Both the position numbers and the translations under genes were made by a program. From Paragordius varius (taxonomy: Eukaryota > Animalia > Nematomorpha): DNA of 64,000 bases. The DNA lies in assembly GCA_964247055.1 (NCBI GenBank), contig OZ176050.1, forward strand, positions 15,004,001 through 15,068,000. Direction: 5' to 3'. The notes under the pieces were generated by a model. The model did not search any database. It was not told where the DNA came from and was given only the letters and a program-made list of their open reading frames with translations. This document shows positions 620-51,595 of the stretch, piece by piece (positions within the stretch are counted from its first letter, which is position 1; each line of letters begins with the position of its first letter).

Positions 620-1631
620 ATGTTAACTATGCAAATATATTTATTATTTCTCATCAGTATAATATCTCCTTCAATATATCTGGCTAAAGATTGTTCTTAC
701 ACCAAAGTAATTAAAGGCTTTTTATGTGTATCTTAGAAATGCAATCCAACCAATCCAAACATGATAAATATTCATTTGATACCGCATACCCACGATGATG
801 CTGGTTGGCTTAAAACTGTAGATCAATATTACATTGGAAGTTTGATTAGCTAATTATACAAAAAATAAAAAAATTTGAATCCCGAATTCATATAAAAACT
901 TTTTATATAAGGTCGAAAATCAATTGATTCCGCCGGCGTGCAATACATTATCGATTCGGTTATGCATGAATTGTATCAAAACCCAACCCGGAAATTTTCG
1001 TACGTTGAAGGCAGTTTTATGCAAAGATGGTTGGCTAATCACGATACTCAACGACATCAGATTCAAAACCTTGTGGATGATGGTTAATTTAATTTTTTCT
1101 TTAAAACAATTTTCAAACTTTTTAGAAATCCCAATTTTAAAATCCAAATATTTTTTGTTTAGGTCGATTGGAAATTTTATCGGGTGGTTGGGTCATGAAT
1201 GATGAAGCATGTGCTCATTACAGTGATATCATAACACAAATGACACTAGGTTTCAAAATTTACAAGGATGCGTTTGGAGGTATTTTATTTTTTTTATTTT
1301 TAATTTTTGGTGATTTTTTCTAAAATATGAATAATTTTTGTTTTTTATCCAATTATATTTTTATTCATTGAAAAATTCAAGCATTTTAATGTTAAAATAA
1401 TGACCAGATGTATATCTCATAGTGCATACAATGTAATTTGTTTTTGTGTTAAAAATACTTAAAAAAATTAAGATTTTTTGCAATTTAGATATATATGATT
1501 GATTTATGAAATAATAAGAACTTTGGCTGTTTATTCAATTTAAAAAGAAACGCGGAAAAAATGTTTTATTATATAGGTAATTAAATACATATCCTACTTG
1601 TATAATATTTAAGCATGTCAAAAGGTAAAGT

Positions 1632-1666
<35 letters not shown>

Positions 1667-4600
1667 TAATTATTTTTTGATTAGTTCCATATATTACAAT
1701 AATTTGTTTTAATTTGCAATTAACGTATAAAATAAATATATACATTTTTTTTCAAAAGTTATATATATTAAAATCGATATATATATATATATATATATAC
1801 AAGGAATATTGATTTAGGTGTTGTTTTACAGACAACTTTAATTTTGGCTTATTATATAATATATTCAAAAATCAAAAATTTTTTAATATATTTTAAACCA
1901 TATATTAAAAAATAATTTTAAGCTGAACATATGGTACTGTTTCTAAAAAAATTATATTTATTATAAAAAAGAATAATTTTACAAGCCGTGGTAAAATGAG
2001 AGAATCTTAAGTGAATTAATATTTTATATGATATGACCACATAGAAGTGAAAATTTTACAATAAATAAGGAATATTGAGTAAAACTTAAATCTTCTAAAC
2101 TCTTTCGTAATGTTAAAATGATTGGTATGTTGTTCAGTAAAGAGAAATATTATTGATTGGGTGAAGTTTAATAAAACTAAATATACGTAAAAAATTAACC
2201 AAGTAAACAATTCATTTTTTTAAAAAAACTTTCATAATAATATGGCTGGTTACTATATATGACATATAATATCTTTCCAATGCAAATCGAACTGTACAAT
2301 CGTTCCCAAATCTTGCCGTAATATTTTACTTAAGTAATTAATACATTTATATCATGTCTTAAGTTATTTAAATCTGCATTTATATTCATATGGCGACTTG
2401 GGATATTCGTTAAAGCAATCAGTTTTATTAACTGAAATATTCTTATTTGCATTTATTTGCGGTTGGATGAACTTATATATATATATATATATATATATTG
2501 TCAGTTTGACCCCTTAAAAATTAAAGAGTTGCTATTTCTTTCAATTCCCTTCTACGTTTACCAGACTCCTTCTTTACAGTGTATCCAGTCATCTTAACAT
2601 TGGTCTTCCTTTTTTTTTCGCTTCAACTTTTCCAAAAATTAAATCCTTCTTAAATGTGACATATGTGAACTTTCTTTTTATTATACCTTTCATTAAGCGA
2701 CTCTCAATATTAAATTTTTCTCTTATTGTGTCATTCTTAACCTTGTTAGTGCATCTCATATTCAACCACATTTAAATCCTTTATTTTATCATTCTGTTTT
2801 AGTGTCGAACTATTATATGTTGCCACCGGAAAAACCATGAATTTCATCACTATCTTTTTGGTTTACACATAGTGATATCTTTACTTTTCCATAATTTAGT
2901 CAACTCGACAAATACATTTTTTTACAACGAAAAATTTTTTATATACCATTTAAACTTTAATCTTACCTTACAACAATTCAAATTCACCCTTAAATTTACT
3001 TCCTAAAATAGATTATATATTGTTTAGGATTAAAAATTATTTACATTTTATATTTGCTAGCAAATTAAATTTTGTTTAAAATTAATATATTACTGAAAAA
3101 AATTATAAACTTTGCGATAAACATATATTTATATTAATAATGAGTTATATTAGTTCGAAAACACAATTTATTTTTAGGGGGAATTTGAATTGGTTGAGGG
3201 TGAATTAAATTGTAAATGGTATATTTGAGTTTTTTTTAAATTTTACACCCTATTTTTTGCCGCCATACTAGGTATGTTTTTTTAATTTCATTTTCTTGTT
3301 TGCCAGTTTGGGTTCCATACCCAATTAATAAATATTATTCATTGCCTAATCATGGCAATCAAAAATATATTATATTTATAAAAGAGTTTTAGTTTTTGTT
3401 TGACTAGGTTTGATAAATATAAAATAAAGCTATTACAATCTTGTAAAATATAGATTCGTTAAAAAAAATTAAGAATTAAACTTTAAAAATTAAGCATTAA
3501 GTTCCCTGGAAATTTAGATTTTATGTCATCTTTAAAGAAAAAATAACTGATGATATACTAATAATTACTGCTATTTAGCCACATATTGTTGATATAATAT
3601 TAAATTCACAGTAAAACTAAAATTACAAAACGTGAAAATATAAAGGCAAATATTTTTTTTCAAAAAGACAACTCCATACATTTCAAACCTTATTTCATCC
3701 TATATAAGCTATTTAATTATAATTAATTATAATATATAAAATTGATTGTGTTACCAATATATATTTCAATAACACACTTTTTACCATTCACACAATGAGT
3801 TATATTTTGAAAAAATGGACTTTTTAAAAAAGGGGTTTTTTTTTGGGGGGGGGGGGAATATTTGTCTTTATATTTTTACATTTTGTCCATGGTATGATTT
3901 CAATTTTTACTGTGTTTTACTTTTTATGCGCCTTTTTCGATTTTTAACATAAGTAACTGATTGCTAATTTTTTATAACTATATACTATTCCCATAGAGTA
4001 TATAGAGCAAAGGGAAATAATATTGGTTTATATTAAGTTAGTTCGCTTTTTATCGTTATAACCTAATAGTAAAACTCCTTGCTATCATGGCAATATTTCA
4101 TAAAAAATTAGCAATTTATACTTTATCACACCTTAAATGTAAAAAATATTCTTTAAATATTTATAATCTTATTATAATTTTTTGTGATATAGAATGTGGA
4201 ATACCACGTACTGGTTGGCAAATTGATCCTTTCGGGCACAGTGCGGCCCAAGCTGATCTATTCACCCGTTTTGGGTTTGATGGAACTTTTTATGGACGCG
4301 TTTCTGATACGCTCAAGGATTGGCGTTCAAGGAATCGAAGCCTGGAATTTTTGTGGCATTATATGCCTGATTGTACTACATATTTAGATTTTTGAGTTTT
4401 TTAGAATTTTAAGTTAGTTATTAGTCTTAAAAGTTTGATGGGATGATTATTAAAAACAAGTTTCTAAAAAATTGGCGATATTTGAAATCTAAGCCTTGAA
4501 TTTTTGTGGCATTACATGCCACATTGTAAAATATTTGTCGGAGTTTTTTGCGGCTTTATTTAAAGTTTTAGTTTTAAATTTAAAGTTTTAGTATTTTAAA

Positions 4601-5987
4601 TTATTTTTGGTTTATATAAATGTATAGATAACCTATTTTTTAATTTTTTGACTCTTATATCTCGATTGGTAAGTCTTAACACCTATAAGGATTGGGTGTT
4701 TTTTACCTGTTATCTACATTATTCCCTAATCATTTTTAATTTAATAAATGACTTTTGCAATGGTAGTTTATTGGTTTATAAGCTTAATAATTTTCAATAA
4801 TATAACCATTATTATATACCATTAACAATTCAAATTTACCCTCAAAATGTGTTTGTCAAGATTAAAATACTTATATTTTATTTTTTTTTAAAAAAAATTT
4901 TTTTAAATTAAAATAATGCTGAAAAAATAATAAGCTATGCAATAAAAATAAATATTATATTAATAATGAGTTATATTAGTTCGAAAACACATAATTTATT
5001 TTTAAGGTGATTTTGAATTGTTCAAGGATGAATTTAAATTGTTCGAGGATGAATTTGAACTGTAAATGAATAAATATGTACTCTAAAATGATATACCATT
5101 TACAATTCAAATTCACCCTTAATATTCACCCTAACAATTCAAATTTATTCTTGAACAATTCAAATTCACCCTCAAATAAAATATATGTTTTTTGAAATAA
5201 AAAATTACCTATATTTTTTTATATTTTAAAAAAGGAAATTACGAAAATTAATATAATACGGAAAAAATAAACTATGCCATAAAGATAAATTTCATATTAA
5301 TAATGAGTTATATTAGTTCGAACACACAAAATTTATTTTTAGGAAGGATGAATTTGAATTGTTCAAGGGTTAAACTGTAAAGGAATAATATTTTTTTTAT
5401 GTATGCTAATGATATATTTATGTTTTCTTTTCTAGTTGATACATTGTATGAGACGCCAGAAAATGTTTCAAATGTAATTTCTAATACTAACATTGATACT
5501 AAAACTTGGGAATTATTTATTGGAATCCTGCCTAACTTGTATCAACCGCCTACAGGATTTTGTTTTGATATTTTTTGTAATGATGAGCCTATACAGGTAG
5601 GTTTTTACCTTTTTTAATATAATTTTGACATATAACTAACTATATTACTTTTTTATGTCGTTAAAACTAGTAATGTAAAAATATTATTTGAAAAAATTAA
5701 TGATAAAGTCTAACGGGTTTTTTCCCCTATTTTTTTATCAGTTGAAATACGGTTTTTTTGATTTCTTATAACGCTTTCTACAATGATAAATTTGTACTCT
5801 GTTTGATAAATTTATATGTTTTATAGACAATTAGGGAACTGGATTTCGCTTAGTTTTTCAGACAATCAAGTTTTAAAACACTTTATTTGGCTTAAAATTG
5901 AAAAAATATAAGCAATTTTTTTGACAAAAAGACAATGTTAATATTTTTAATCAAAAAAAAGAAATTTAACATTTTTTCGGTTTTTTA

Positions 5988-6021
<34 letters not shown>

Positions 6022-9000
6022 TGTATTTTAGGATAGGTTTTCAAAATTAATTTTTTTAGCTATTTAATTTTTAAAATTAATTTTAATTGCAAAATTGAGA
6101 GAATTACACATATATATTATAAAATTTATTAAAAATTAAGTTGAAATGCGTATATTATTAAAAAATAATTTTTAATTTTCGACTTTTATTGTAAAGTCTT
6201 TATCGAAAAAAAATTGAAAGGAATTGAATTCCAAATTTATTTTTCAAAATTTTTATTTAAATTGCTTTAAATAATTTAAAATATAAATATAATTCTCAGG
6301 ATGATATAACACTCAAAGATTACAACGTGGAAGAAAGGATTGAATCATTTTTGAACCAAATGATAAGTCAGGCGCGAATGTATGATACAAATCACCTGAT
6401 CGTCACCATGGGAAGCGATTTCCATTATCAAGCTGCGGGCAATTGGTTTGCCAATTTAGATCGACTCATTAAACATATCAATCGAAAGGTTTTTTGATAT
6501 TAAAATATTCTTTTTTAAAACTTTAAAATACTTTTTTAGCAATTAATTAGGCAACATTATTTGATTTAAAAGCTTAAAACTTCTTTTTTTAATGTGTAAA
6601 GCTTTTTTGATAATTGAAAATACAGTAAAAATTAAAATTATACGGACAAAACGTAAAAATATAAAGACAAATACTTTTTTTCTAAAAGACAACTACCATA
6701 CTTTTTGAATCTTCATTTTTTTGAATATAACTCTTTTAAAAGTGTGAATTAGTTATATATATCAATCAATCGATATTTTACCATCGTTATTAAAATAGAT
6801 AAAAAATTAAGGTTTTAAAAAGTATGGTTGTCTTTTAAAATAAAAAACATATTTGCCTTTAGAATTTTACGTTTTGTCCGTATAATTTTATTTTTTACTG
6901 CATTTCAAATTAAAAATATGCCATTTAAACCTTAAACATTTTAAATTAATCCCTAAATATTTTTGGAATATTATTTAAAGGGAAACCTTGTAAGATGAAA
7001 ATTTTTCATAAATATTCAACTATACCATAAATAACTCTTTAAAATTTCCTATCCATAATAAGATTACCCCAAAAAGGAAAACACACAAACTATATTATAT
7101 TTTTATGGGGTGAATTTGACATGTTTGTTCGAGGGTTTCTATTGAGATTAGTTATTGAAAAATATTTTATCATATCAAATCATAAAATTTTAGCGAACTA
7201 AAAATGGATCCGATATTCAATTCAATGCCCTTTACAGTACACCCGGTTGCTACCTATACGCTTTGAATGAAGCTAAAAATGGTGGTCAATCGACGACCAG
7301 CAAAACGTTTGACAAATCTCAAAAAATTAGGACAAATAAAACGCTCTTGAAAAGTATTTTACATTTACAAAAACGGACTTAAAACACAAAAAATATAAGG
7401 ACAAATGCTTCTTTTTTTCTAACTGAACCTCAAACGTTGATTTTTCTTTATAAATTTTGCAATTATAATTGTAAAATATATGTTATTGATTGCAATATAG
7501 ATATATAGATATATAATTATTACTTTGAAATTTTAAACAATGATATATCTTAAATAAATCAAGATTTAAAAATTATGGTTGTATTTTATAAAAAAATATT
7601 TGTCTTTTTATTTTTACGTTTTACCTAGATAATTTCAATTTTTACTGTATATTATAGTTTATTTTAATATGAATAAAACTATCGAGGGAGGAAATTTAAA
7701 ACTTCACCTTAATAATTAGTATGTTTTTTTATTAAATACTAACAACAATAAATATTAATTTAATTCCCACATTTTAACGGGTATTATATCAAATTTCAAC
7801 GAATTTTGATTGACGAATTTAATCAAAATCAATATAACTTTTTATGATTTTTCAAATTTAATATACCTATATATTAACCTTAGAAAATAATGGGACCGCC
7901 TTTGTACCCTTAACACGGAATTTGGCAGATCCTACAATTAATTATAGCAGCAGTTGGCCTCAAAAATTTGCGGGTGATTTTTTTCCCCTTCAAAATTATT
8001 ATACGAATGTTTGGACGGGTTATTTCACTAGTCGGCCTACCCTTAAAGGCATGATTCGAGATGCTAGTCGATTTTTACATGTAAGACTCCTTTTGTAAGA
8101 CTTAAACTATTGAGAGTTTTCTTTTTTAACACGCGTGTGGCATTTCAAACTATTTCTATGGCTCATGAGAGATAAATTTCAATTACCAATTTTTTAGCAC
8201 GAAATTTAAACATAAAATTATATATGAAAAAAAGTATCTTTTGTAATGTAACTTATATAGTTTTGAGCTGTGAAATAGTTAAAACATTCAATATTGTAAC
8301 ATAAAGGTTTATAAAAATTAGTTACCAAATTTTTTTTAACCTTAAAGAAAAAACATTGAATACGGACAAAAGATAAAAATATAAAAAAACATTGTCTTAA
8401 AAGATCACTTTACTTTTTTTTCATATAATATACCAAACTCCTTGTTTAAAATTGCAAAGTATGAAACAGAAATGTACAGTGGTGACACAATCAATTACTA
8501 AACAATTGTAATAAAATAACTTGTATGCGAAAAATTAGGGTTTTATGTCTTTTGGAAGTAATCTATAAAAAGTGCACAGTCTTTTGCAAAAAAATGTCTT
8601 TATTTTTACGTTTTGTCCGTATAATTTCAATTTTAATCTATATATATATATTTATATATATGTAGAAAGGCCAAAATTATTCCTTTTAACTGCTTTTCCC
8701 TATAAAACCCCCCTCCCCCCTTTACCTTTTTTAAAACACATTTCGCAGATTTGTCGGGCATTTGACGTACTAGCCGATCTAATGGCCAGGACTGCTCAAG
8801 TGAGAGCACTTGAGAAGGCAGTTTCTTTAACTCAACACCACGATGCTGTTACAGGAACTGCAAAGCAAGCTGTAACTTTTGATTACATGCAAAGACTGCA
8901 TGAAGCTAAACAAGGCTGTGAAGTATGTGCTAAATTTTTTGAGTTTTAAATTGATATTTTTTGATTGGAGTTAGAATTTGATTTTGTGTGATTGTTAGAG

Positions 9001-9338
9001 CAAAAAATTCGAATTATATGAATGGGCGAAAAAAGACGTAAAAATATAAAGATAAATTTTCCTTTATAAATCTTTATTTTGTTTTAAGTATAACTCATTG
9101 TTTTAAACTATGGATGATGAAATAGAGATTTACACAATATATAATACGCATTTTAAATTGAATGATTTTAAAGGTAAATGTTTAAAAAAGTATGGTGGCT
9201 GTCATTTATAAAACCATTTAGCCTTTAAATTTTTACGTGCCGCATATAATTTCAACACACTAATTATGCAATATATTTGATTTTATTTGAAATTTTGTGG
9301 GGAAATTGATTTAAGTAAGTTTCTCGTTTCCATTTTTG

Positions 9339-9370
<32 letters not shown>

Positions 9371-9952
9371 CAAAAAATCCTATGTGTATATGAGACGTTT
9401 AAATTAAATTAAATTAGATTTATATGATTGAGTTTTATTTCTATTTTAATTTAATTTGCAATATCGATTTGGTTTTTTAAATGATTTATATCCATGGTGA
9501 TTTCTTGTTATTTCAATTAAAATTTGTTTTCTAGGAATTAGAAAGTTACTCAATAATAAAAATTTAATAATTTTATTTTATTAGATAGTGTTTTGCTATT
9601 TTTTGCAAATAAAAACATATTGTTATGAATACGTATTGAAAATAACGGTTACAAAATATAGATCCATAAAATATTTTTATTGAAAATTTTTAACTATTAG
9701 TACAATTATAATTAAATTATATCTTGAATCATTGAATAGGAAGTTATTGAAGAAGCCTTACAAACCCTAAACATAGTTCATGAGAATCAAAAAGTTGAAT
9801 TTTGTCATTTACTTAATATAAGCATTTGTCCAGCCACCACAAGTTTAGGAGGCTCTCAATCTCAACAAAAGGTACTATGCCTTTTTTTCATTTTAGAAAT
9901 GGATAAAAATTTATTTATTATAAAACATCAATAAATTAATATTTTCATTCTT

Positions 9953-9983
<31 letters not shown>

Positions 9984-10205
9984 TGAAAAGTAATGTTATA
10001 ACTTTTTAGAATTTTTTTCTTTTTCAAGGGTGATAAATATTATAAATTATTCCTAGTTTAGTATATATACCCAACTGTAAAACTTAATAATCGTTAAATA
10101 TTAATGGAATCAAACATATATTTTAATATCTTTTTTTAGGGTTTATGAATTTAAGTTTGTGAAATTAAGGGTAAAATTTTAATAAGATAAAATTACAGTT
10201 AAACC

Positions 10206-10247
<42 letters not shown>

Positions 10248-13200
10248 TATAGTAAAAATTGAAAACTTTTTAAATCATGATTTATTTCGATATAACTCAT
10301 TGTTTTAATTGTCAAAGTGTGAAATAGATATATATATATATATATATATATAACTAACACAATCAATTCTTTATTTTACAATTGTAACTAAATAGCTTAT
10401 AAAAGAAAAATTAAAGTTTAACAAAGTATGGTGGTTGTCTTTTAGAAAAACATATTTGTATATTTTTACGTTTTGTCCTTTCGTATAATTATTTTAAATT
10501 TTACTGTACTTATAAAATAAATTTTAGTTAACCTTATTAATGTACAATCCATTGGCTTGGGATGTGTCCACCCATTTTGAAATACCTATCGTCTCTGGTG
10601 CAGATATAAGGCTTCTTGATGATCAAGATTCTCAAATCTCTATACAAGTTGCTTTTGTTGCTTTTTTTGTTTTTTAGATTTTTTTAAAAAAAATATTTTT
10701 AAATTATGATTTACTGGATAACTTTGTGAATAATAAATGTATGATAAAATATGGAAACCTGGGTTTTTACCAATTATAAATATCCTTTAATAACCATTAA
10801 TGTATGATATTATCATAAATTTTAAAATTAATTCTCTTTAAATAGATGAGGTTTCTTTCTTTGAAAAAATAATATTTTTCATATTTTAAACGGTATTAAT
10901 TATTTTTTTAAATATTGGACTAAATTTCTAGAAAATAGAGAGTTGCGTTTGCTATGTGTAAATTTAAAAAATAACTCTTTTCTTATACATATAAAGCCAA
11001 CATATTTTGGGTATTTTTCTTTAACTATTAGTTTGTATATGCCCTTAGTAACTTAATGTTTTAAAACGCGCTGTCAAAATATTTATATGGGAATCAATAT
11101 AAAATATTAAGCAAAAAATAATAAAAATTTTCAAAAAATGAGATTTTAATAAACTTTAGCGTTATAAACTCTATTTAATTATATATTTTTAGTTAACACA
11201 ACTTTAACTTTTGATATATCTTATTTTGTGCAGATATCCGATATACCAGAATCCGTCCTACGTATCCCTGAACGTAAAAACCACAATGGTGATTTAAGGA
11301 AACAATCACCGTCTTCATATATAAATTCTCCTCAAACTGTTGAAAGAATAGATGAATATGATCGGATTTTAACAACCTATAAATACAGAAATTTTCCCCT
11401 CTCACCCGGCGAACGAGCGCATTTCCTATCAAATTTACCAACGCAAAGTTTAATTTTTCCAGCAAAGCTACCAGCTATGAGTGTTACAGCCTACCATTTA
11501 TATTATCAACAACAAAGTAGTAATAGAGATAATAAAGATAGTATAAATCAAATTAGAAAACGGAAACAGGGGTAATAATTTTTTGGCCTAAAACAATATT
11601 TGATTCAAAGCAAGGGTGTCCGACACGCGGCATATTCAATTTAACCTAATAAAACTTAAAAAACCATAATCTTTAAAAATTATTACACAAAATCCTTGTA
11701 AATTAATATTATAACAAATTTTTTTTTATTATATATAAGAAGTTTTTCCAAACTTAAGCAACCAGCAAGCAAAAATTGGTGTACTAAATAGTAATTTTGT
11801 CTCATAATAATAACACTTTTTACAAATTTTACATATAATATTTTTGATTTCGGCTTGCTAAGTTTTTGGAATCTAAAATGTGGCCCTCGAAGCCATTTAT
11901 GTTGAACACTCTTTAAAAGGTTAGTTCAATTTCACCCTTGAATGTTCGAATTCACACTCTAACAATATAAATTCACTCTAAGAATAAATATATGTTTTCG
12001 GGAAAATATAACTAACTTATCATTAATATGAAATATATTCTTATGGCATATTTAGTTTTTTTTTCGTATTTTAAAATTAAACAAAATTTTATATTTTAAG
12101 CATATTGTAAAATAAAGGTAATTTTTAATCTTAAAAAACTAGGGTGAATTTAAATTTGAGGGTGAATTGTTTAATTGTGAATTTGAATTGTTTAAGCGTG
12201 AATTAGAATTGTAAATGGTATATATAGTTTTTTCAAAACTTTTTTATAAAAAAAATTAAGATTTTATAAAAATATTTTTCTGTTTTACATAAAAATAATT
12301 GTTTATCAATGTAATTAATATATTAATAACTCCTGTCTAATTTGATTAAATTGTCCAGTGTTGTCCTTATTTTATATATATATATATATATATATTAAAA
12401 TATATACGGACAAAACGTATTAATATGACAAATATTTTTTTTAAAAACATTCATACTTTTCAAAACTTCAATTTTTTTTATAGAAGCTATTTAGTTAAAT
12501 TGTAAAATATAGAATTGATTGTGGTATTATATAACTCTATTTCACACTTTGCTATTTAAAACAATGAGTTTTATTGATATAAATATAGATTTAAAAAGCA
12601 GGAGTGGTATTAAGAAAAAAATATTTGTCTTTATATTATTGCGGTCCGCAAAATTTCAGTTTTTACTGTACATATTGAATAATCAATAATTATTAATATT
12701 TATTGTAATGTAAAAATTAGTTTATCAGATGTGGTTGATGATCCGCAAAGTTATGTGTTGGAAAACTCAGTAACTCTTTACTTATTTACTTACTTACTTA
12801 CATTTTTATATGACAAACATATATATTGCTATTTTTTTTCTTAAAATTAAATATTAAAATTATTAACATTTAAAGTAAAGAGCAAATATATTGGTTAAAT
12901 TCCATGAAAAACTTTAAAAGTATACATTATTTTTTATATCTGTACCAACTTTAACCCAATATTATTACTCTTACATATTTAACCGTAAAAAGCGAAAAGG
13001 CAAAGCATAAAGGTTAAAATATAGTATATTTTCTACTAAGAAAAAGAAAGCCATATCTATTTATAATTTTTCGTAATGTAGTCTATCTATCGTTTAGGTA
13101 AAAAAATAAGGTAGTATACAGATGTAAAATTGATACAAATTATAAATTTATAATTTTTAATTGATATCACTTAGGCATAATAAAATAAAGTATGCATTTT

Positions 13201-16200
13201 AATGGTTGCTTATTTTACATTATAGCACACAGTAAGTAGTGTTTAATGGAAAAAACAACAAAATGTTGAATAAACAATTATTTCCTTTCTTTTTTTCATG
13301 AACTCTTATAGTGTTGCAAGCCCTATAGTTTGTGAAATAAGCAACCATTAAAAAGCTTACTGCAAATTAAGGTTTAAAAAGTTTAAGGCTGTTTCATAAA
13401 AAATCGGTTTTTACTTTTTTTGCGTTTTTTTATTGCATAATTTTCTTTATATGTTATATTTTGTGAGTAAAAGTGAGAACCACTGTATATAACTGGATCA
13501 TAAAATTTCTATGCTCTACTTATATTAAACAAACTTAGTTCTTTTAGTATAAATGCTATATTTCTACCAATGTTTAGGATAAAAAAACTTGAAATTTAAT
13601 ACATAAAATCTATAATTCAAACTTTTTTTATGCCAGAAAATTAGCATTTCAATTCATAATAGCTAGCTATAATAATTCAAACTTTTTTTAACATGATGGA
13701 TGATATATTATTTACAGTTCAATTTCGCCCTTGAAAAATTCAAATTCACTCTCTAAAAATAAAATATGTGTTTTCGAACTTATATAACTCATTATTAATA
13801 TGATGAGTTATCTTTATGGCGCATAGTTTATTATTTTTTCAGTATTATTTTAATTTAAAACAAAATTTTATCATTTCCATAAAATATAAATATTGGTAAT
13901 TTTAATTCTTAAAAAACATTTATTTTTTATTTGAGGGTGAATTTGAATTGTTCAAGGGATAGTGTGTATATATTGTTTAAGGCAATTTCAATTGGTGAAT
14001 TTGAATTGTTCAAGGCAGGTGAATTTAAATATTAAGAGTGAATTTGAATCGTTCAAGGAGGGGGAATTTAAACTGTTTAAGGGTGAATTTGAATTGTTCG
14101 AGGGATAGGGTGAATATATTGTTTAACGGTGAATTTGAATTGTTCAAGTAAATTTGAATTGTTCAAGGAGGGTGAATTTTAATTGTTCAAGGAAGGTGAA
14201 TTGGAATTGTTCAAGGCGGGTGAATTTAAACTGTTTCAAGGGTGAATTTGAATTGTAAATGATGATTTGATATCTAAAATAGATGTTACGCATTACGTTT
14301 GATCCGAAAACTAAGCTCCTTTCACGGATAGATGGGAAGGATATGGAACGGCCATTTAGCATAAATGTGCGACAGTCATATATGTGGTATGGACAACCTT
14401 ATACTCATGCAAACAAAGGATCAGGTGCTTATATATTCCTTGCAAATGCCCCTGAAGCCAATAATATATCGCGTTGGATGGGCACAGATAACACTGCTGT
14501 CCAACTTGAAATTATTAAAGTTTAGTTCTATTTTGTTCCATGATTAATTTGCTTTTTTGAATCTAACTTATAAGATTTTTTTAGTAATTTGGTTTGTGTT
14601 TACTCATTAATTAATATAAATGTCGTAAATATTGCTTGAAAAGTTTTGGTGTTTATATAGAGAAGGCATGAAAAACGATGTTAAACTTAATAGCATTTGT
14701 ATGCAGAAATAATTATTTAGTCTGGGGTTGGGTACGTAATATAAATAAAAAAACAAAAAAATTACAAATATGGTTGTCTTTAAGCCAAAAATTTCGTTTC
14801 AACTTTAAATTTTCTCCTTTTACCTGGTATCTATTTATGATGTTTGAGAAACTAAAAATCAAAAATAACTTATTATTATATTTTTTGGTTTATTCTATAA
14901 AATATTTTTAAATATAATTTGTGCACAAAAAAACTTGGTTTAATTTACTTATAACTAAAACAGGGTCCAGTATTTCAACAAGCTCGACAACGCTTTACCC
15001 CATTCCTGTATTTAGAAACTACATTGTATGTCGGAGATAATAATATAGATTACATTGTTCAGGATTGGACAGTAGGACCGCTTCCTCGAAAAGATGCGCC
15101 AAATTCAAACGCTGAAAGTCCGAAAGATTTCGTTTTAAGGTGGGAAACGGATTTGCAAACTTCAACGCAGGAACCTAAAACAGAACCTTACCAAGATCAA
15201 AGCAGCCCCAATAATCAAAATTCAACGTAAAAACATTTTCACAATTTACTAATTTGTGTAAAAATATAAATTTTGTGTTTTTTTATCTTTTTATGATTAA
15301 GTTATAAGTTTTTTTAGTCGACATATATCCTATTTTTTCAAACTTAAACCTTGGGACTGATCAAAATAACGTATAAAACTTATATTACATTTCATATTTT
15401 ATGTATGAATTTGATGTCTTATACAGCAGGGATTCTTAAACTATATGTCGCGGCCCCGTTTGGGGTCGCGTAGCAAAAATATTGGGTCGCGAGTGATAAA
15501 AATATTATTTAACAAAAAATGTTTTTTAACTTGTAAAATTATTGTTATAAAGAAAAATAACAATCATCGTAGATATACATATATCATAAAATCTTCCGAT
15601 TTGGAAAGACTGTTTATACCAGCATTTCTATTCCGATCATTTTAATAGCTTGTATAAATTAACTATGAATCAGAAGATCATATGGAAATTCATAAAATAT
15701 GTAGATTTAGTATATTGTTACCTAACAAATATATCATCAAAAAATATAAATTGATTTTACTTTTATATTTGTTGGGATTGTTAAAAAATCCGAAATCATA
15801 AATGGGGTCGGGAATTACAAAAGTTTAAGAAGCCCTGTTTTACAGTAAAAATTAAGATTATATTATGGGCAAAACGTTAAAATATAAAGAAAAATATTTT
15901 TTTTCAAAATTTAACCATAAATTTTTACAACTTGATTAATAAAAATATAAACTCATTGTAAAGTATGATATAGATACGTAAATTCGTAAATCAATGATAT
16001 ATTTTAAAATTTTAATTAAAGTTATATAGGTAAAAACTACTACAAAAGTATGGTTGTTTTTGGAAGAAAAAAACATTTGTCTTTTATATTTTGTCCGTAT
16101 AATTTCATTTTTACTGTATTTTCTCCAAATATATATATATATATATATATATATTTTATCCCATATATATATATTATACAATTATCATCGCTCAAAATGA

Positions 16201-22576: not shown

Positions 22577-22611
22577 ACGAGATGGTTTAATGAATGTAAA
22601 ATAATAAAAGC
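22577..22611. promoter_or_regulatory. Inferred bidirectional promoter core between the TIM23 and CNOT11 start codons
   Basis: Only 35 bp (44 bp if TIM23 starts at 22567) separate two divergent, conserved housekeeping CDSs. Inferred from geometry only; no motif is claimed. Confidence 0.6.
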
Positions 22612-34189: not shown

Positions 34190-34225
<36 letters not shown>

Positions 34226-36923: not shown

Positions 36924-36973
<50 letters not shown>

Positions 36974-37987
36974 TAATCCTCAATGCATTTAATATAATTT
37001 GAATAAATACTATTGGCAAAAATATATTTGAGTTTATAATTGTATATTTTATTCCTGGTTTTACAAACTAAAACGATAAATTATTTATTTTAAAAGTAAC
37101 TGATGCTTTAACTTAATTTTCAAATATATATATATATATATATATAAATTCACCCTTGAACATTCAATTCACGCTCGAACAATTCAAATTTCCCCTTAAA
37201 TAACTTATGTGTTTTTTAATGTTTAAAACTACCTAAATATTAAAATAAAATTTTGTGTAATTGTAGTAAATATAGAAACCGTAAAACAATAAGATTTATT
37301 GAGATAAAGTGCAAAAACTAAACTACATACAGTATGCGATGTTTATATACTTTTTGTGAATACAATATTTACATGTTAAACCAAGGTAAAATAACGTGTG
37401 CAGGTTAAATACAAAATTGATACAATAGTTTAACTCATATATAAAAGGTCATCAAAATGTATTCAAATCTAATATATAAATTGGTCTCATCTAAGGTTAA
37501 CTAACTTGATGTATTCTAATCTATCAGTAATATTAACATAATACTGAAAATATAATAGACTATGCCATGAGAAATAATTGATATTAATGATGAGTTAGTT
37601 ATATTAGCCCGAATACACATATTTTAGTTTTAAGGAATTTGAATTGTTTAGGGGTGTTACATTGTTCAAGAGTGTAGTTGAATTGCAAATGGTATATATA
37701 ATCTTACCTTATTTTACCAATTATAAGTTTTTATATGTTCCATAATTTATCCATATTATGTAATTATTTTATTTTTGCAGGAAATATTGATAGAAATTCA
37801 AGCATTTTGTATTGAATTCAGTCGTATTCGAGAGGCCGCTGGTCTTTTCCGGCTACTTCGAAGTTTAGAAAATGAAACGAATACCTCAAATTTTAACCAT
37901 CCTAACTTAACTAATGAGTCCCTTTTATTAGCTCATCGTGAAAATGGTGAATCCAATAATCTTTTTGACAACACTTTACATAGTTAA
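22612..37987 (+). CDS. CNOT11: CCR4-NOT complex subunit 11 (C2orf29), 16 exons, about 898 aa with lineage-specific low-complexity insertions
   Basis: Exons: 22612-22649, 22680-22785, 22849-22983, 23692-23817, 24524-24711, 25410-25525, 26548-26646, 28196-28444, 30303-30557, 31410-31577, 32860-33132, 33774-34183, 34848-34948, 35345-35414, 36420-36575, 37781-37987; phases are consistent. Motifs: [112 protein letters not shown]. Confidence 0.94.
23453..23634. mobile_element. MITE family C copy
   Basis: ta|cagtgtgcattttaatggttgcttattt ... aaataagcaaccattaaaatgcatacg|ta. Confidence 0.8.
26105..26565 (+). repeat. Tandem repeat, 214-bp period, two full units plus the start of a third, each unit boundary carrying a 3' splice-site sequence
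   Basis: AG dinucleotides at 26118-19, 26332-33 and 26546-47, exactly 214 apart; shared internal text attggcttgatgaa.actatctcgatac...aaaatcataaaatatttatttttgcacaaaa. Confidence 0.9.
27255..27340 (+). repeat. Direct repeat, two copies of about 44 bp
   Basis: ttaatataaaaatgtcatataaaatggaaatattttttaac occurs twice in tandem. Confidence 0.85.
27600..28190 (+). repeat. Minisatellite, about 6 units of 90-115 bp, running up to the CNOT11 exon 8 acceptor
   Basis: Recurrent core acaatctaataaaaaac.cacatatcaagtcaagatttaaa near 27605, 27703, 27814, 27919, 28034 and 28125. Confidence 0.85.
28478..28965 (+). repeat. Minisatellite, 4 units of about 130 bp, starting just after the CNOT11 exon 8 donor
   Basis: Recurrent ttaattcgctt.ttaaagtgtgttaaagtagcttatatgtgtaccgttttt near 28480, 28612, 28750 and 28870. 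Confidence 0.9.
30619..30924. mobile_element. MITE family A copy
   Basis: ta|cagaataaaaactgatattatactggacaaaagg ... tgtccgtataatttcaatttttactg|ta. Confidence 0.8.
32292..32498. mobile_element. MITE family C copy
   Basis: gatgcattttaatggtttattt ... agcaaccattaaaatgcatactg|ta. Confidence 0.75.
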
Positions 37988-42252: not shown

Positions 42253-43451
42253 CTGTCAAAACGATGGCTAGATGAAGTTATAAAGATCAACTGATATATT
42301 TAGTCTGCCGAAATCGGAAGGTATAAAAAAACAATAAAATATATATACATATATATATTGATACTTTTGGTTTTACTCCTTAAGAGTGATATAAAAAGTT
42401 ATACTTTTGCTGCATGTAGATCAGATAAATGGTAATATTGCGCACTTTTTTTAAATTTTTGGCGAAAAAATATCACTAAAATATAATATAAACCACATTT
42501 AAAAACTTAAATATTTTTATAATTTTATTTTTAGATGTGAGCTTCGAAAGTCCCAAATTTTCTTCTAAAATGCCATATTACTCTTAAAATAAATGCAAAA
42601 CTGCCGAAATTGGGGATTAAAAATCTATAATATATTTTATTAAGTTGTTATTATACCACGAAGTCGGACGTATTATTATTAATTTTTATTATCATTTGTA
42701 AAAATAACTGATATGCATGATAAAAGCCATAATTTATAGGAAACATTTAAATTTCTTGCATAATAAATTATCTTCAATCGTAGTTCGAAAAAATAATACA
42801 CACAATTCTTTATTTGCTATAATTGCACAGTGTCCACGAAATACCCGATAATACTTGTATATTCCAAAAAATATAGGATGATCATGGGGCATATTACTCA
42901 CATTATATCATAAAATAACAAACTTTGCGCGCATTTTTATAAATAAAAAATAGAATTAAATTACATAATTTAATGAAAAACAAAGCAATATTTTTTAAAA
43001 TTAGAAGTTTTTCCATCTTTTAAAGTGTATTATTATCTTAAAATAAACGCAAAAATTTCGCGATCGCGTAAAATTTTAAATTAATGGTAAATTATCAATT
43101 AAAGAAATATTTTAATGTATATCATTAAAAAATTTAAGAAAAATTTTGTAAAAGCATCATACTATTTTGAGTCCTGATGGAAACGGCTTAAAACTGCTTT
43201 ATATGATTTCACCTTTTTTAAAATAACTCATTTCTATCACCTCGAAATTTTAAGTAAATCGTCAAATTCTTATATAGAAAATTTTTTTATAAAAAAAATA
43301 GCAAACAAGTCTTTTATTTCAAATTTTAAGGTAGTAAAAATTCAGCATCTTTGAAATTTATAGTTAAAATAATTTTATAATCTTAAAATGTTTTTAAATC
43401 TCCATCATCAGTTAAAATAGTATGTAGGCTTTAAGACAAAATTTTATTTAA

Positions 43452-46921: not shown

Positions 46922-49900
46922 ATGCTCAGATATTTAATTTACGGTTTAGTTTTGAAATTGTCCATTTTGGCAGCACGCGAAAACTATGATTTATGCGTTA
47001 ATAAAAAAATAAAGATTAAAGTTTAAAATTTTTATATTGAAGAATGCTGTTTGTACTTTATGTAATGTAACACAAATTAATCGGTCTTTAATCAACCCGA
47101 ATTTTGAAATTAATATCAAGACATATCGCTGGATGACCCAAATTGATGAACAAAATTACCAAAATTATATCGGAATTAATATAAGCTGGACAATAAATAA
47201 TTTGGTTACGAAGTAAATTATTATATAGAAATTAGGGATGTTCAATTTGCGGTATATAATGTTTTAAATGATCCAAAAATGAACCTATTTTCACCAAAAA
47301 CAATACAATGTAATGATTTAATTAAGTTAGAGGTATGATACGCATTTAATAAAATTAGAATCTATATTATGATTGCCTTTTTATGTTTCCTAATACACAA
47401 CCTCTTATACTCTATATTGAATCTTACATATCTTATCATTACTTTAGTCAGAAATATGTATCTCTGCCCAGTATAAATGACATCTTAAGTTTAATTTTTA
47501 ATATTAATTGGTTTTTATAGCTTTTCATAGTTGGAAACCAACCCTAACCTATACTTTTTCCCATTCAACAAACCCTAATCAAAATTTATCAGTTGATTTA
47601 GACATTTCTCTTATTGTGGGACATGTACAAACGCCCCCTAAATTTTTACATACTAAATTTTTTGGTTCAATCCAAATTGTATTATGGGTACTACTAAATG
47701 CATCAACGTTTGAAACTCTATCCTATGGTCAATTACTTTTTAGTTTGCATGATACATCTAAAGCCTCTCAACTTTGGCCTGTATCTGTTAAACTAATCAA
47801 AGCGGTAAGTTTTCTTTTAGCTTTTTTATCTATAATTTGTCTTTAAATTATCCTACATTGTTGCCTAATTTAGACGGAACCAGATAGTCTTGAGAAATTT
47901 GTATTCACCTTTCAAGATCTATTTAACCCTTACATCGTGGACCAGTTAATTCACAATAAGCTCAATTCTTTATCACCAGTGTATGCCAATGACTCGTTTG
48001 GTAAATTATCGGAAAATTTTTCAAACGCATTTTCTACACGACCTAGCCCACAAAGTATTTTAGCTTTAAGGTCGTTGTATTTAAACAGCTCTACCATTTT
48101 TTTCATGACGGCCCATAAAATGCCACAGTCTCAAAATGAGCTTAATCAAAAGTCGAAGGAAACCAAAAAATGTTTAAACAATTATTGGAATGCGGCGGGA
48201 GATTGGACACCTTGGTTCACGTGCACATTTAATTTGTCGGATAATGGTACCATAACTTCTGTGGTCGGTAGTATACCTGCAATTATGTCGCTAGGCTTTC
48301 ATTTCGCTTATATGGCAAAATATTATCCTTTTACTATGGGCCAAAACAACCAAGCCTTTTTAACACACTATTTTTCCCTCTTTAATATGCAACAAAAAAG
48401 ATTTGAAGGAAAGGCTGTCTTATTTCTTATTGTTTTATCCGTACTTTTTACGCTGGTTTTAGCGAGTTGCGTTGTGTTTGGGTATTACCGTAAAATCTAC
48501 TCCAAAAAGATATGGAACGGATGTTCTGATACAAATGTAAGTTCTGAAAATGTAAATCGACATAATTATGAAACACCTCTACTAGAATCAAAAGCTAAAC
48601 CGCCGAATGTTTTAGTTTTATATCCACCATTTCTTAAAGAATCTTTAACTATGGGCGTGGAATTGATTGAAACGTTTTGTGACATTTTCCAAACGCATTT
48701 TGACTGCAAAGTACATTTGGATTTGTGGAACTTATTAGAGGTAGTAGACCCTTTTTAAAATTTTTAAAACGTTGATTAAATATCTTAAATTAGGAATATA
48801 TCATTAAGTCAAAAGGAACATTTTTTCAAGCAAACGCGACATTTTTATTCAAACGCAGCATTTTTTCGATTTTCTGGATTAAAAAATTGTTGTCTCTTTT
48901 AAAAAATTTGCGTTTGCATGAAAAAATTTTGTGTTTTCTTGAAAAAAATGTAAAGCTATTATGATATTTTTTTTAAAAAAGTTTTATTTTATAACTTAGA
49001 ATAAGTCTTCGCATCCACTTTTTTGGTTACAAGAATCTATATCCAATTCACAAGTTGTGATTTACCTTATCCCAGCATGTAAAATTGGGGACATTGAAAA
49101 AAAGGCCAAAATTAGACAGGAACTTTTTATTTTCAAGGATTATATGATGCGTTTGGCGTCTCAGGGAAAACTACCAACTATCATAAAACATAAATTATGG
49201 TCAAATTTGTTTAATGCCTCCCTTCGTCTCATAATATCGCAACAATTAACATCACAAGAAAATGAATACCGCAGTAAAGGCGACCACCTACAAATCATAT
49301 TTATCATCCTAGGTTTCCAAAATATTATTGCCGATGAAATGCCAAACGAATCTTGTTGTGTAGAAAGTAATTACATAATAAATTATTTCAAACTACTTAA
49401 AGGGCTCTGCCCAAGCTCCAAATTAATTTTGGTTGGTGAACCACAAAAACAAGCGAATTCCAGCTATATGAATCCCATTTTTTATCATTTATCAAGCGTT
49501 TTGCCAGTAAAGATAAAGGGCGAAAACATAGTTGACGAGACTAAGGATAAGCATAAAAGCTTTACAACACTCTTAACTAGGTTTAATTGGCTCTTTAACA
49601 ATATAAATATGGACACACAAGATAGACCAATAGAGGAATCCATCTTTCCAACAAACAATATAACAGGAACTGAAAATCTAGAGCTTATAAATTTAACAGA
49701 TATAGACCGTAAAATTGACAATTCCTTCCTGTATGATTTCAATTCAAGCCTGCTAACACTAAATGATGTACCCTTGTTTGAAACAATGTTGGGCAACGTG
49801 CCAGATAATACAGAAAAAACGACAGATATATCAGTTCAAAAGGGCAGTTTTAGGGCAATTGATAATAGTCAATACTTGGATATTGGTGAACACCTAAACT

Positions 49901-49956
49901 CATACATGCGATTATTTAATGTGCCGACATTCGAAAAACTCAAAAAGGGGAAATAG
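46922..49956 (+). CDS. IL-17 receptor family-like type I membrane protein with SEFIR domain, 7 exons, about 860-867 aa
   Basis: Exons: 46922-47020 (or -46996), 47043-47212, 47236-47332, 47359-47488, 47521-47804, 47874-48740, 49000-49956. Signal peptide MLRYLIYGLVLKLSILAA; Cys- and N-glycosylation-rich ectodomain (NVT, NRS, NIS, YDC, FHSWKP); transmembrane segment AVLFLIVLSVLFTLVLASCVVFGYY followed by RK; SEFIR-like boxes PNVLVLYPP...FQTHFDCKVHLDLW...FWLQESISNSQVVIYL. Confidence 0.75.
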
Positions 49957-50099
49957 TTTTATTGAGATTTATGCGATCCATATTATACTGTGAAATTTTT
50001 TTAGCTATCTTTGGTTTCATATGGATGATGGATAGAATATATCAATTCTAAAAAAACTCTATGGTAACTAACTGACTATTCAACGATGTACTTAACATA

Positions 50100-51595
50100 A
50101 TGGGGAATATCTTTACACAAGTAAATTTTTTCGTTTTTTAAGCCAATATTATTATAATTAACTCATCATTGTCTATATCATATCATAACATATTTGCAGG
50201 AAAATGTGGAAGAAAAATTCGAAATTATACTACGCAATCATAGGGTGGCCTTCGAATCCAAATGGAATTCGCATGAAAAAGGTGCGTATAGCAAATGCGA
50301 TGATTTCATTTACATTAGGCGTTTGGGGGAGGGCGGATTTGGTAAAGTCCTCCTGGGAAAGTGTAAAAGAACCAAAAAGTTTTTTGCCATAAAACTCATG
50401 TTAAAACGCGACTTGGTAGATAAACGACAAGTCAAACAAGCCTTCAATGAACGCAAAATTTTGTTTTGCAATGATTTCCGTTTCCTCATGTCACTCCACA
50501 GTTTTGCCAAAGATTATTCCACCCTTTATCTCGTGATGGAGTTTATGGATGGTGGGGAACTCTATGCCTACCTCAAACGCATGAAACGTTTTAGCGAACC
50601 GCTAGGCCGCTTTTATGCGGCACAAGTCATTCTTGGCATCAAATATCTCCATACGATGGATCTCACTTACCGTGATATGAAACCCGAAAATTTGCTGTTG
50701 GACATTCGCGGTTACCTCAAGATTGGTGATTTTGGCTTTGCTAAGAAGGTTAAAAACAAAACTTGGACTTTTTGTGGAACACCTGATTACATGGCACCCG
50801 AAGTTATCTTGAGTCTCGGTATGAATCAAGCTGTCGATTGGTGGGGCATTGGTATCCTGATATTTGAAATGTGCGCCGGCTTTGCACCCTTTGCCGACCC
50901 CCAAGAGGACAATGTATATGCCAAAATATTGGCTGGCCAATACAAAATTCCTTACCATTTTAGTCAACAAGTAGTTGGTAGTTTTTTTGTTTTACACAAT
51001 AGAAATTGGAATTATACGGATAAAACGTAAAAATATAAAGGCAAATATTTTTTTCTCGAAAGACTAACCATACTTTTTTAAGCTTATTTTTTTCTTAAAT
51101 GAACTATTCAATCCTTTTAAAATATATAATTGATTGTTACATACTTTATTTCAAACAATGAATTTCAATTAATCAATCAATTAGGATTAAAAAAGTATGG
51201 TTATCTTTTAGAAAAAAATATTTGTCTTTTAACGTTTTGTCCGTATAATTCCAATTTTTACTGTAATTTTCATGTCGTCAAAAACCATTTTCCAAATGAT
51301 TATTTTTCATATTTAAACGTGTGCGCAGGTAGAAGATTTAATTGAACAATTTCTAAGGGCAAACCCTTCGACTCGATTGGGTATGGGTGCGAATGATACA
51401 CAAAAAATAAGAAGTCATCCCTGGTTTACTAATTTGGATTGGACGCTTATATATGAGAAAAAAATTATATCGGATTTGGTCCCCGATTGTCCGACACGAT
51501 TGCAGTTGGAAAGTAAAAAACAGGCTGACATTCAAAAACATTTGGGCCCTGTGGCGAGCTCTGAGGAATTTCCTGATCTTTTTGCGGATTTTTGA
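50100..51595 (+). CDS. Divergent cAMP-dependent protein kinase catalytic subunit-like AGC kinase, 3 exons
   Basis: Exons: 50100-50120 (MGNIFTQ), 50200-50970, 51329-51595. Motifs GEGGFGKV, FAIK, YRDMKPENLL, DFGFAK, TWTFCGTPDYMAPE, AVDWWGIGILIFEM, HPWF and a terminal FxxF hydrophobic motif (FADF-stop) typical of PKA-C. Confidence 0.9.

Follow-up and report, generated by a model that had tools for sequence, protein, structure and literature searches.

Clusters of very short introns at gene starts have been described in parasitic flatworms. Gyrodactylus salaris has intron-length modes of ~32 and 58 bp, the shorter of which is found at intron positions 1-2 (PMC4040987). Opisthorchis felineus has three length peaks (37, 90 and about 3000 bp), and its microintrons group close to the transcription start (PMC6530080). 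Flatworm authors have proposed intron definition for such introns (PMC6530080, PMC4040987, PMC3254664). GT-AG introns of less than 30 nt have been published in animals for myxobolid myxozoans and Dicyema japonicum only; in a 2026 survey of 51 animal genomes, they were present in myxobolids and one dicyemid only (PMC13644364).

The DNA analysed here, a stretch of 64 kb referred to as the window, comes from an AT-rich genome. The organism is not a platyhelminth: it is closest to Gordionus, a hairworm (Ecdysozoa), and the only strong relative of an F-box/Kelch protein was found in Gordionus sp. m RMFG-2023 (a hairworm), with 43% identity. Nematodes, the sister phylum, have short AT-rich introns with a UUUUCAG-type 3′ site, and the intron mode of C. 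elegans is about 47-50 nt; to our knowledge, neither a 22-32-nt class nor 5′ clustering has been reported for C. elegans. Short AT-rich introns are a feature shared by nematodes and the window, and a branch-point consensus is not obvious in either. Because the organism is not a flatworm and is related to Gordionus, the 5′ micro-intron layout described below is new for the hairworm phylum, although already published for flatworms. As it is already known in parasitic flatworms, the layout apparently arose a second time, in hairworms.

Six genes were rebuilt in the window, with a total of 56 introns and a median intron length above 500 nt. Seven introns measured 32 nt or less (22-32 nt, hereafter micro-introns), five measured 63-80 nt and 44 measured at least 137 nt (137-2913 nt), while no intron fell in the 33-62-nt or 81-136-nt intervals. 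If the 12 short introns were uniformly distributed in length, the empty gap from 32 to 63 nt would have a probability of P = 0.004, in a sample that is small for length modes (six genes from one window). The lengths of ~35 long introns are accurate to about ±50 nt, and their class is unaffected. All the intron lengths and orders previously given by the sequence-only reading were re-derived from the sequence. Its three discrete classes, in contrast, were reduced to two discrete short classes, since the third corresponds to a transposon-inflated tail, which is broad and continuous from 137 nt upwards and has no mode.

The 5′ bias of short introns was confirmed and lies far beyond chance in the window: all 12 short introns preceded every long intron of their own gene (exact P = 1.7e-7; within-gene permutation, P ≤ 5e-6). 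Moreover, 22-32-nt introns preceded 63-80-nt introns in each of the three genes having both (1/30). Micro-introns occupied intron position 1 in four genes and positions 2-4 in one gene, and all seven were located inside the first 38-493 nt of coding sequence. Short introns also adjoined each other, with four micro-introns in the receptor-like gene and contiguous runs in the mannosidase and CNOT11 genes. Beyond the short run, no length gradient was observed (mannosidase, rho 0.05); intron length therefore changes in a step and not along a slope. Coordinates are collected in Table 1.

Table 1. Predicted genes and selected introns of the window.
Feature	Positions	Strand	Basis or remark
Lysosomal alpha-mannosidase gene	620..19163	+	about 21 exons; junction enumeration and Pfam Glyco_hydro_38N
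Mannosidase intron 1, 30 nt, GT-AG	707..736	+	only GT..AG solution keeping frame
Mannosidase intron 2, 72 nt	840..911	+	junction enumeration; contiguous profile coordinates
Mannosidase intron 3, 80 nt	1083..1162	+	junction enumeration; contiguous profile coordinates
Mannosidase intron 4, 2913 nt	1280..4192	+	first long intron; contiguous profile coordinates
TIM23-type gene (Tim17/22/23 family)	20796..22567	-	Pfam Tim17 match, last exon, E=3e-6
TIM23 intron 1, 24 nt, GT-AG	22457..22480	-	read-through gives GTA TGA (stop)
TIM23 intron 2, 383 nt	21980..22362	-	first long intron
CNOT11 gene	22612..37984	+	about 16 exons; Pfam CNOT11 profile
CNOT11 intron 1, 30 nt, GT-AG	22650..22679	+	second allele in DNA run X1
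CNOT11 intron 2, 63 nt	22786..22848	+	variation versus organism B contig
CNOT11 intron 3, 708 nt	22984..23691	+	first long intron
Orphan type-I membrane protein gene ('IL17R-like'; receptor-like)	46922..49956	+	7 exons; frame-restoring ORF chain
Receptor-like intron 1, ambiguous	46997..47042	+	25 nt (46997-47021), 22 nt (47021-47042) or 46 nt
Receptor-like intron 2, 23 nt, GT-AG	47213..47235	+	sole GT-AG solution
Receptor-like intron 3, 26 nt, GT-AG	47333..47358	+	unique solution
Receptor-like intron 4, 32 nt, GT-AG	47489..47520	+	weaker alternatives of 20 or 50 nt
Receptor-like intron 5, 69 nt	47805..47873	+	ORF chaining
Receptor-like intron 6, 259 nt	48741..48999	+	ORF chaining
PKA-like AGC kinase gene (MGN start)	50101..51595	+	Pkinase E=1e-59
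Kinase intron 1, 79 nt	50121..50199	+	sequence reading
Kinase intron 2, 358 nt	50971..51328	+	MITE inside
Short-type oxysterol-binding-protein-related gene (ORP)	51955..58454	-	Oxysterol_BP profile
ORP intron 1, 392 nt	57963..58354	-	repeat block inside
ORP intron 2, 137 nt	57750..57886	-	shortest of long tail; junction analysis

In the mannosidase gene, exons 2-5 corresponded, in order, to positions 1-21, 23-71, 74-111 and 114-164 of the Glyco_hydro_38N profile, with contiguous Pfam coordinates over introns 2-4. Intron 1 contains an in-frame TAG and separates the signal-peptide exon from the first conserved exon. Intron 4, in which MITE copies were found at 2930-3238 and 3595-3919, is followed by 16 further introns (about 330-1550 nt), introns 4-20 all measuring at least 330 nt.

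The heads of the TIM23 and CNOT11 genes are 44 nt apart. TIM23 introns measure, in order, 24, 383, 675 and about 249 nt; in CNOT11, intron 3 is followed by 12 more introns (396-1858 nt), and the last three exons corresponded to positions 21-46, 49-97 and 100-124 of the CNOT11 profile. The second allele of CNOT11 intron 1 in DNA run X1 carried substitutions at 22655 and 22666 and a 1-nt deletion at about 22677, while the flanking CNOT11 exons were unchanged in the same contig, suggesting that constraint on this intron is relaxed compared with its flanking exons. In the same run, the allele variants of TIM23 exon 3 were all synonymous (5 out of 5). Substitutions were also observed between the organism B contig and CNOT11 intron 2, into which the seven gaps of that contig may also fall; in CNOT11 exon 3, all seven differences from this contig were synonymous. 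Overall, 13 of the 14 exonic differences in natural DNA variation were synonymous. The sequencing runs containing the locus are DNA runs, and no sequence of the locus was found in the runs presumed to be RNA. Exon-sized PDB and Pfam queries across the TIM23 and CNOT11 micro-intron junctions, which were too short to score, gave no matches. At the junction of TIM23 intron 1, animal TIM23 N-termini presumably fit without a gap, and homology across the 24- and 30-nt introns of TIM23 and CNOT11 is likewise presumed, from the fit to human sequences.

The receptor-like gene has a spliced frame that is open from ATG to stop over 866 codons, and the predicted frame had the top coding score in all seven exons. 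ORF chaining is the sole basis for its four micro-introns. For intron 2, GC-AG joins of 29 and 44 nt would also keep the frame. The GC content of this intron was 13%, compared with 26% in the exons on either side. The predicted protein belonged to no Pfam family, gave no matches in a word search, no PDB match at E ≤ 10 and no relative among 1.84 billion representatives, and its Atlas scores were all below 0.8. The label 'IL17R-like' given earlier thus found no support in Pfam, PDB or sequence-relative searches. An IL-17 receptor/SEFIR identity was not supported, as neither the domain nor relatives were found using unjoined queries, the putative domain being split by the 259-nt intron.

Long introns were frequently associated with transposons. 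A MITE family of ~300 nt (30-40 copies) was present in nearly every long intron, and the window's own repeat families cover 20-25% of its length. Kinase intron 2 is composed of an ~87-nt intron and a ~269-nt MITE (50995-51263), with a TA duplication and inverted arms at 50996-51039 and 51221-51264. In ORP, successive exons corresponded to Oxysterol_BP positions 13-64, 57-90, 90-149, 148-177, 170-220 and 271-367, and introns measure, in order, 392, 137 and then 204-1404 nt. This gene had been presented as an exception to the short-first order; a 392-nt intron does come first, but its length is partly accounted for by a 294-nt MITE block (58016-58309), leaving about 98 nt. At least two introns of the long tail therefore consist of an intron of about 90 nt and a MITE of 270-300 nt. 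Several introns of 137-259 nt contain no recognisable repeat, so transposon inflation is not the whole explanation.

All 12 short introns begin with GTA or GTT and end with (T/A)AG or CAG, and their 3′ ends read WTTWAG. Their GC content ranged from 12 to 27%, versus 26-35% in exons, and removal of each of them restored the reading frame. If retained, the introns of 30, 30 and 24 nt, the lengths of which are multiples of three, would introduce in-frame stops, and the remaining 22-32-nt introns would cause frameshifts. The predicted short introns are very probably real.

The layout has in common with that of flatworms (Opisthorchis, Gyrodactylus, Schistosoma mansoni and tapeworms) the presence of two short modes and a broad long mode, with clustered microintrons and the shortest introns at the first positions. 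The sequence-only reading had warned that such a 5′ skew was known in these worms, a caveat that was correct and weightier than assumed (PMC4040987, PMC6530080). However, the micro class measures 22-32 nt here, partly below the 30-nt limit, versus 32-37 nt in flatworms, and the change from short to long introns has no exceptions in this window, whereas it is statistical in theirs. Predicted GT-AG introns of less than 30 nt in an animal are the point of likeness to Myxobolidae and Dicyema. The genomes of these two groups, in contrast, are compact and TE-poor, with a median intron length of 22-27 bp throughout; in the window, ultra-short introns are restricted to gene starts (7 introns out of 56), among kilobase introns and abundant repeats. 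A lineage with genome-wide ultra-short introns was ruled out on the basis of this proportion, the median above 500 nt and the repeat content of 20-25%.

The best explanation, to which we assign a probability of roughly 0.6, is that these are ordinary (U2-type) GT-AG spliceosomal introns of a hairworm-type, nematomorph genome in a flatworm-like layout, with a short 5′ run followed by an abrupt switch to long introns. Each intron-bearing gene would open with a run of short introns, ~22-32 nt first and ~63-80 nt next, which would be recognisable only across the intron (intron definition); later introns, inflated by MITEs and other transposons, would probably be recognised across exons (exon definition). 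Two workable spliceosome geometries would most likely underlie the two short lengths, in-between lengths being disfavoured: ~63-80 nt would give room for simultaneous binding of U1 (5′ site) and U2 (branch site), while ~22-32 nt would be too short for both, so that assembly would be sequential. Since an insertion in a micro-intron would abolish its recognition, the 5′ run would stay clean while downstream introns grow. Exon sizes resemble those expected from the intron-/exon-definition model, with large internal exons (771 and 867 nt) adjoining short introns only and exons of about 410 nt or less flanked by long introns on both sides, but this model alone predicts neither the 22-32-nt optimum nor the 5′ anchoring. 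Intron lengths and order, frame restoration, repeat content and sequence variation were observed directly; actual splicing, the assignment to intron or exon definition and the steric basis of the two modes are what we infer from them. The flatworm-like explanation gives no reason for the 5′ anchoring of the run, and any such reason would be conjectural.

A less likely account is that the 22-32-nt introns need help available at the start only, with the cap-binding complex or early-elongation RNA polymerase II recruiting snRNPs; as this help would exist only near the transcript start, micro-introns would persist only in the first few hundred nucleotides. The location of all seven micro-introns, ahead of the 63-80-nt introns, is consistent with this, and a role in transcription or processing has been suggested for the 5′ microintron clusters of flatworms (PMC6530080). 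However, the distance rule is not clean, with the 383-nt TIM23 intron at coding position 181 and a receptor-like micro-intron at 493, and a run lasting until the first long intron fits as well as a distance limit. The cap-proximal or specialised splicing mode proposed earlier would be pure conjecture.

Somewhat less probable again is a purely mutational origin with a position-blind spliceosome, in which a transcription-associated deletion bias would shrink introns near the start further and combine with the purging of insertions that disturb promoters or first-exon recognition, while MITEs would drive growth downstream. Long introns are indeed packed with MITEs, two of them returning to about 90 nt after MITE subtraction, and the proximity of the TIM23 and CNOT11 heads suggests that 5′ regions are under tight spacing. 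A smooth gradient, however, predicts neither the empty 33-62-nt interval nor the strict order of micro before ~63-80-nt introns, and the recurrence of two short modes in unrelated flatworms points to a machinery constraint (PMC4040987, PMC6530080). A model-building artefact, with true starts at downstream methionines and upstream exons made of chance frames and chance GT..AG joins, is very improbable. In its favour, frame-joining GT..AG pairs arise readily by chance in this sequence, with 168 joins (18-40 nt, at least 40 open codons on each side) counted as opposed to 5-32 in simulated sequence, and no homologue was found for the receptor-like gene. Against it, the CNOT11 and TIM23 N-terminal peptides presumably run gap-free into conserved sequence, mannosidase exon 1 encodes a typical signal peptide, needed in any lysosomal enzyme, the indel allele of the CNOT11 micro-intron leaves the exons intact, and the receptor-like gene reaches its 866-codon open frame through four consecutive junctions (one GT-AG solution for each of the middle two), with the best coding scores in all seven exons.

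If the flatworm-like layout were confirmed by RNA, hairworms would be the third animal lineage with introns below 30 nt, the first such lineage with a large, transposon-rich genome, and the second, unrelated phylum with flatworm-type micro-introns at gene starts. Such convergence would suggest that the layout is constrained by the splicing or transcription machinery and is not a peculiarity of one lineage, and would provide two systems for testing this constraint. A further reading, that hairworms have a position-dependent two-tier short-intron system, independent of that of flatworms, in which the 22-32-nt tier excludes joint occupancy by U1 and U2, is doubtful; if true, spliceosomes would have to assemble by a distinct route, linked to the cap or to early transcription, and there would be a general convergent rule for first exons in exon-defined, long-intron animal genomes.

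Default gene finders and read aligners have a minimum intron length of about 20-40 nt, and many hairworm genes would consequently be truncated or mis-started. Missed 5′ exons may also partly account for the low BUSCO scores, and for the 'gene loss', that have been reported in the hairworm phylum. The earlier expectation that annotators overlook such exons agrees with what is documented in Schistosoma and Clonorchis (PMC3254664, PMC6530080).

Most of the 168 chance-type GT..AG joins were located inside real long ORFs. The repeat block at 50985-51272, in kinase intron 2, has 33 other copies. The best matches of the kinase itself were PKA catalytic subunits, with about 50% identity, the top ones being from nematodes.

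All frame-keeping GT..AG pairs between successive coding frames were enumerated in the window, which reproduced the intron lengths and order given by the sequence-only reading. This enumeration yielded 56 predicted introns: 7 of at most 32 nt (micro-introns), none of 33–62 nt, 5 of 63–80 nt (mini-introns), none of 81–136 nt and 44 of at least 137 nt (long introns), with the length of about 35 long introns accurate to about 50 nt only, class being unaffected. The empty interval from 32 to 63 nt had a probability of 0.004, based on 12 short introns and an assumed uniform spread.

In every gene that has them, the short introns (12 in all) came ahead of the long ones (P = 1.7e-7 by exact test and ≤ 5e-6 by permutation). 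Moreover, micro-introns preceded mini-introns in the three genes having both (3 out of 3; 1/30), and were located at coding positions 38–493. The short-intron observation is thus confirmed in the sequence, and the 5′ bias, as claimed from the sequence alone, holds in the window far beyond chance. Past its short run, the mannosidase gene exhibited no length gradient (rho 0.05), so the pattern is a step.

Genes, introns and repeats in the window (positions relative to the window)
Feature	Position	Strand	Introns, in order (nt)
Lysosomal alpha-mannosidase	620–19163	+	30, 72, 80, 2913, 1063, 703, 705, then 13 of ~330–1550
TIM23 (Tim17/22/23 family; TIM23 is our reading)	20796–22567	-	24, 383, 675, ~249
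CNOT11	22612–37984	+	30, 63, 708, then 12 of 396–1858
F-box/Kelch gene	38971–42255	-	intronless
Receptor-like gene, orphan, predicted membrane protein (formerly 'IL17R-like')	46922–49956	+	25 (or 22, or 46), 23, 26, 32, 69, 259
PKA-like kinase	50101–51595	+	79, 358
ORP, short-type	51955–58454	-	392, 137, then 204–1404
MITE copies (examples)	173–428, 3595–3919, 6611–6917, 10184–10530, 36583–36976, 50985–51272, 58016–58309		
Mariner-like transposase remnant	59548–60027	-	
Second repeat family, in long introns	13947–14400, 4980–5170, 29957–30290		

Three discrete intron classes had been proposed, of which the two short groups stand, each followed by an empty interval, while the third is a tail. 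Repeat families, as detected by self-comparison, made up 20–25% of the window. The main family was a MITE (a short non-autonomous transposon) of 270–300 nt, whose long inverted ends are of Tc1/mariner type and flanked by a duplicated TA; it was present in 30–40 copies in the 64 kb and in nearly every long intron. In intron 2 of the kinase gene, about 87 nt are left once its one MITE is subtracted. The ORP gene had been described as an exception to the 5′ bias, which is true of the present length of its intron 1 but not of the roughly 98 nt that are left without its single MITE; before insertion, the first two introns were therefore the shortest of the gene. Since introns of 137–259 nt without recognisable repeats also exist, MITE inflation explains only part of the tail. 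A second repeat family, consisting of short tandem units (reading ...GAATTTGAATTGTTCAAGG...), was observed in several long introns.

Several features of the short introns indicate that they are very unlikely to be an artefact of model building, as judged from sequence. All of them started with GTA or GTT and ended with WAG or CAG, and their GC content was 12–27%, versus 26–35% in exons. The mannosidase exons matched positions 1–21, 23–71, 74–111 and 114–164 of the Glyco_hydro_38N profile, in order; as these segments are contiguous, the 72-, 80- and 2913-nt introns fall exactly between them. The ORP exons likewise covered successive segments of the Oxysterol_BP profile. The 30-nt mannosidase intron contained an in-frame TAG and was flanked by a typical signal-peptide exon on one side and the first conserved exon on the other. 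For the 24-nt TIM23 and 30-nt CNOT11 introns, the N-terminal peptides presumably run without a gap into conserved sequence, by comparison with the human proteins. Neither TIM23 exons 1 and 2, searched singly against PDB, nor the small 5′ exons of TIM23 and CNOT11, searched against Pfam, gave matches, such exon-sized queries being too short to score.

For the receptor-like gene, the coding sequence was joined in a script to track the frame. Four frame changes in succession were resolved into a single frame of 866 codons from ATG to stop, and the predicted frame had the best coding score in all seven exons. The middle two junctions had a single frame-keeping GT..AG pair, and the first and fourth had alternatives. 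When GT..AG pairs that connect open frames were scanned for blindly, chance joins were frequent and the result was too noisy for detection. Because single joins are common by chance, the evidence for this gene lies in the whole chain and not in any one junction, and support for its predicted introns is weaker than for the other short introns. The predicted protein has a signal peptide and one membrane span. With exons used individually as queries, relatives were found neither in Pfam, PDB or Atlas, nor by word search, nor among 1.84 billion representative proteins. By these searches the gene is an orphan, and its 'IL17R-like' label is to be regarded as putative.

Natural variation provides independent support for the short introns. 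A second haplotype was present at 22477–22833 in X1, a deep DNA sequencing run. This second allele differed from the window at five places in all: two of them lie in the 44 nt that separate the TIM23 and CNOT11 start codons, and the other three, two substitutions and a 1-nt deletion, in the 30-nt CNOT11 intron, with zero differences in exons. Elsewhere, TIM23 exon 3 had five variants in X1, every one of them synonymous, as were all seven differences in CNOT11 exon 3 in a run labelled as another organism (13 of the 14 exonic variants overall). The latter run contained a copy of 22757–22989 diverged by 2–5%. Contigs from X1 and from X3, another DNA run, were genomic over 20401–26400, spanning introns and repeats; no sequence matching this region was found in two other runs, X4 and X6. 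In the run search, words from the locus occurred in DNA runs X1–X3 only and were absent from the small presumed-RNA runs. Excision at the DNA level (IES-like) was rejected, as the 30-nt segment is retained in X1, which is DNA, and its ends fit splice sites.

TIM23 (-, ATG at 22567) and CNOT11 (+, ATG at 22612) are arranged head-to-head, and with 44 nt between the start codons, their 5′ UTRs must be tiny or overlapping. The first 13 bases of the TIM23 24-nt and CNOT11 30-nt introns were identical (GTATGAAAAAATT; 22457–22680 region).

A 5′ skew of tiny introns in flatworms, mentioned in the sequence-only reading, is indeed published. The intron lengths of Opisthorchis felineus show peaks at 37, 90 and ~3000 bp, and its microintrons are clustered preferentially near the transcription start, for which the authors suggest intron definition (PMC6530080). 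Gyrodactylus salaris has one mode at ~32 bp, which prevails at ordinal positions 1–2, and another at ~58 bp, which prevails from 3 up (PMC4040987). Like these flatworms, the Paragordius varius window has two short modes, with the shortest introns at gene starts; what is new is the phylum, Nematomorpha, and a shorter micro class. Animal introns below 30 bp have been published for myxobolid myxozoans and Dicyema only, and nematomorphs are not mentioned in a 2026 survey of 51 genomes (PMC13644364). The Gordionus genome paper reports 26.9% GC and 64% repeats, mainly DNA transposons; the word 'intron' is absent from it and from a four-species hairworm comparison.

Overall, the interpretation given in the sequence-only reading is partly supported. 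The most likely explanation is that hairworms independently acquired a flatworm-like intron architecture: a 5′-anchored run of short introns, with two workable lengths, would be recognised by intron definition, and the long, transposon-inflated introns that follow would be exon-defined. Just two internal exons were very large (771 and 867 nt), and both adjoined short introns, which is consistent with this intron- versus exon-definition account. The two modes may have a steric cause; this, like whatever anchors the run at the 5′ end, is inferred. The splicing mode acting close to the cap, put forward initially, is a less likely alternative, and a purely mutational account slightly less likely again.

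GC content in the window ranged from 19 to 39%, with about 24% outside coding blocks, and an Rfam search of the 64 kb returned zero matches. In a word search, every match to the kinase exon was a PKA catalytic subunit, with identities of about 50% (best in nematodes), and no close relative was found. Among 5.8 billion proteins searched, the sole strong relative of the F-box/Kelch protein was from Gordionus sp. m RMFG-2023, a horsehair worm (43% identity). Together with the nematode matches of the kinase, this points to a nematomorph-type genome well separated from Gordionus, as opposed to a flatworm. The Paragordius gene has 1095 codons and 39% GC; its Gordionus counterpart (locus L001, 10001–12565) is also intronless, and no neighbouring genes are common to the two loci. 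Finally, a candidate 20-nt GT-AG intron (62859–62878, -) was observed joining two open frames of a serine/threonine-rich gene, which covers 62450–63003, perhaps on to 63785, and may extend beyond the window.
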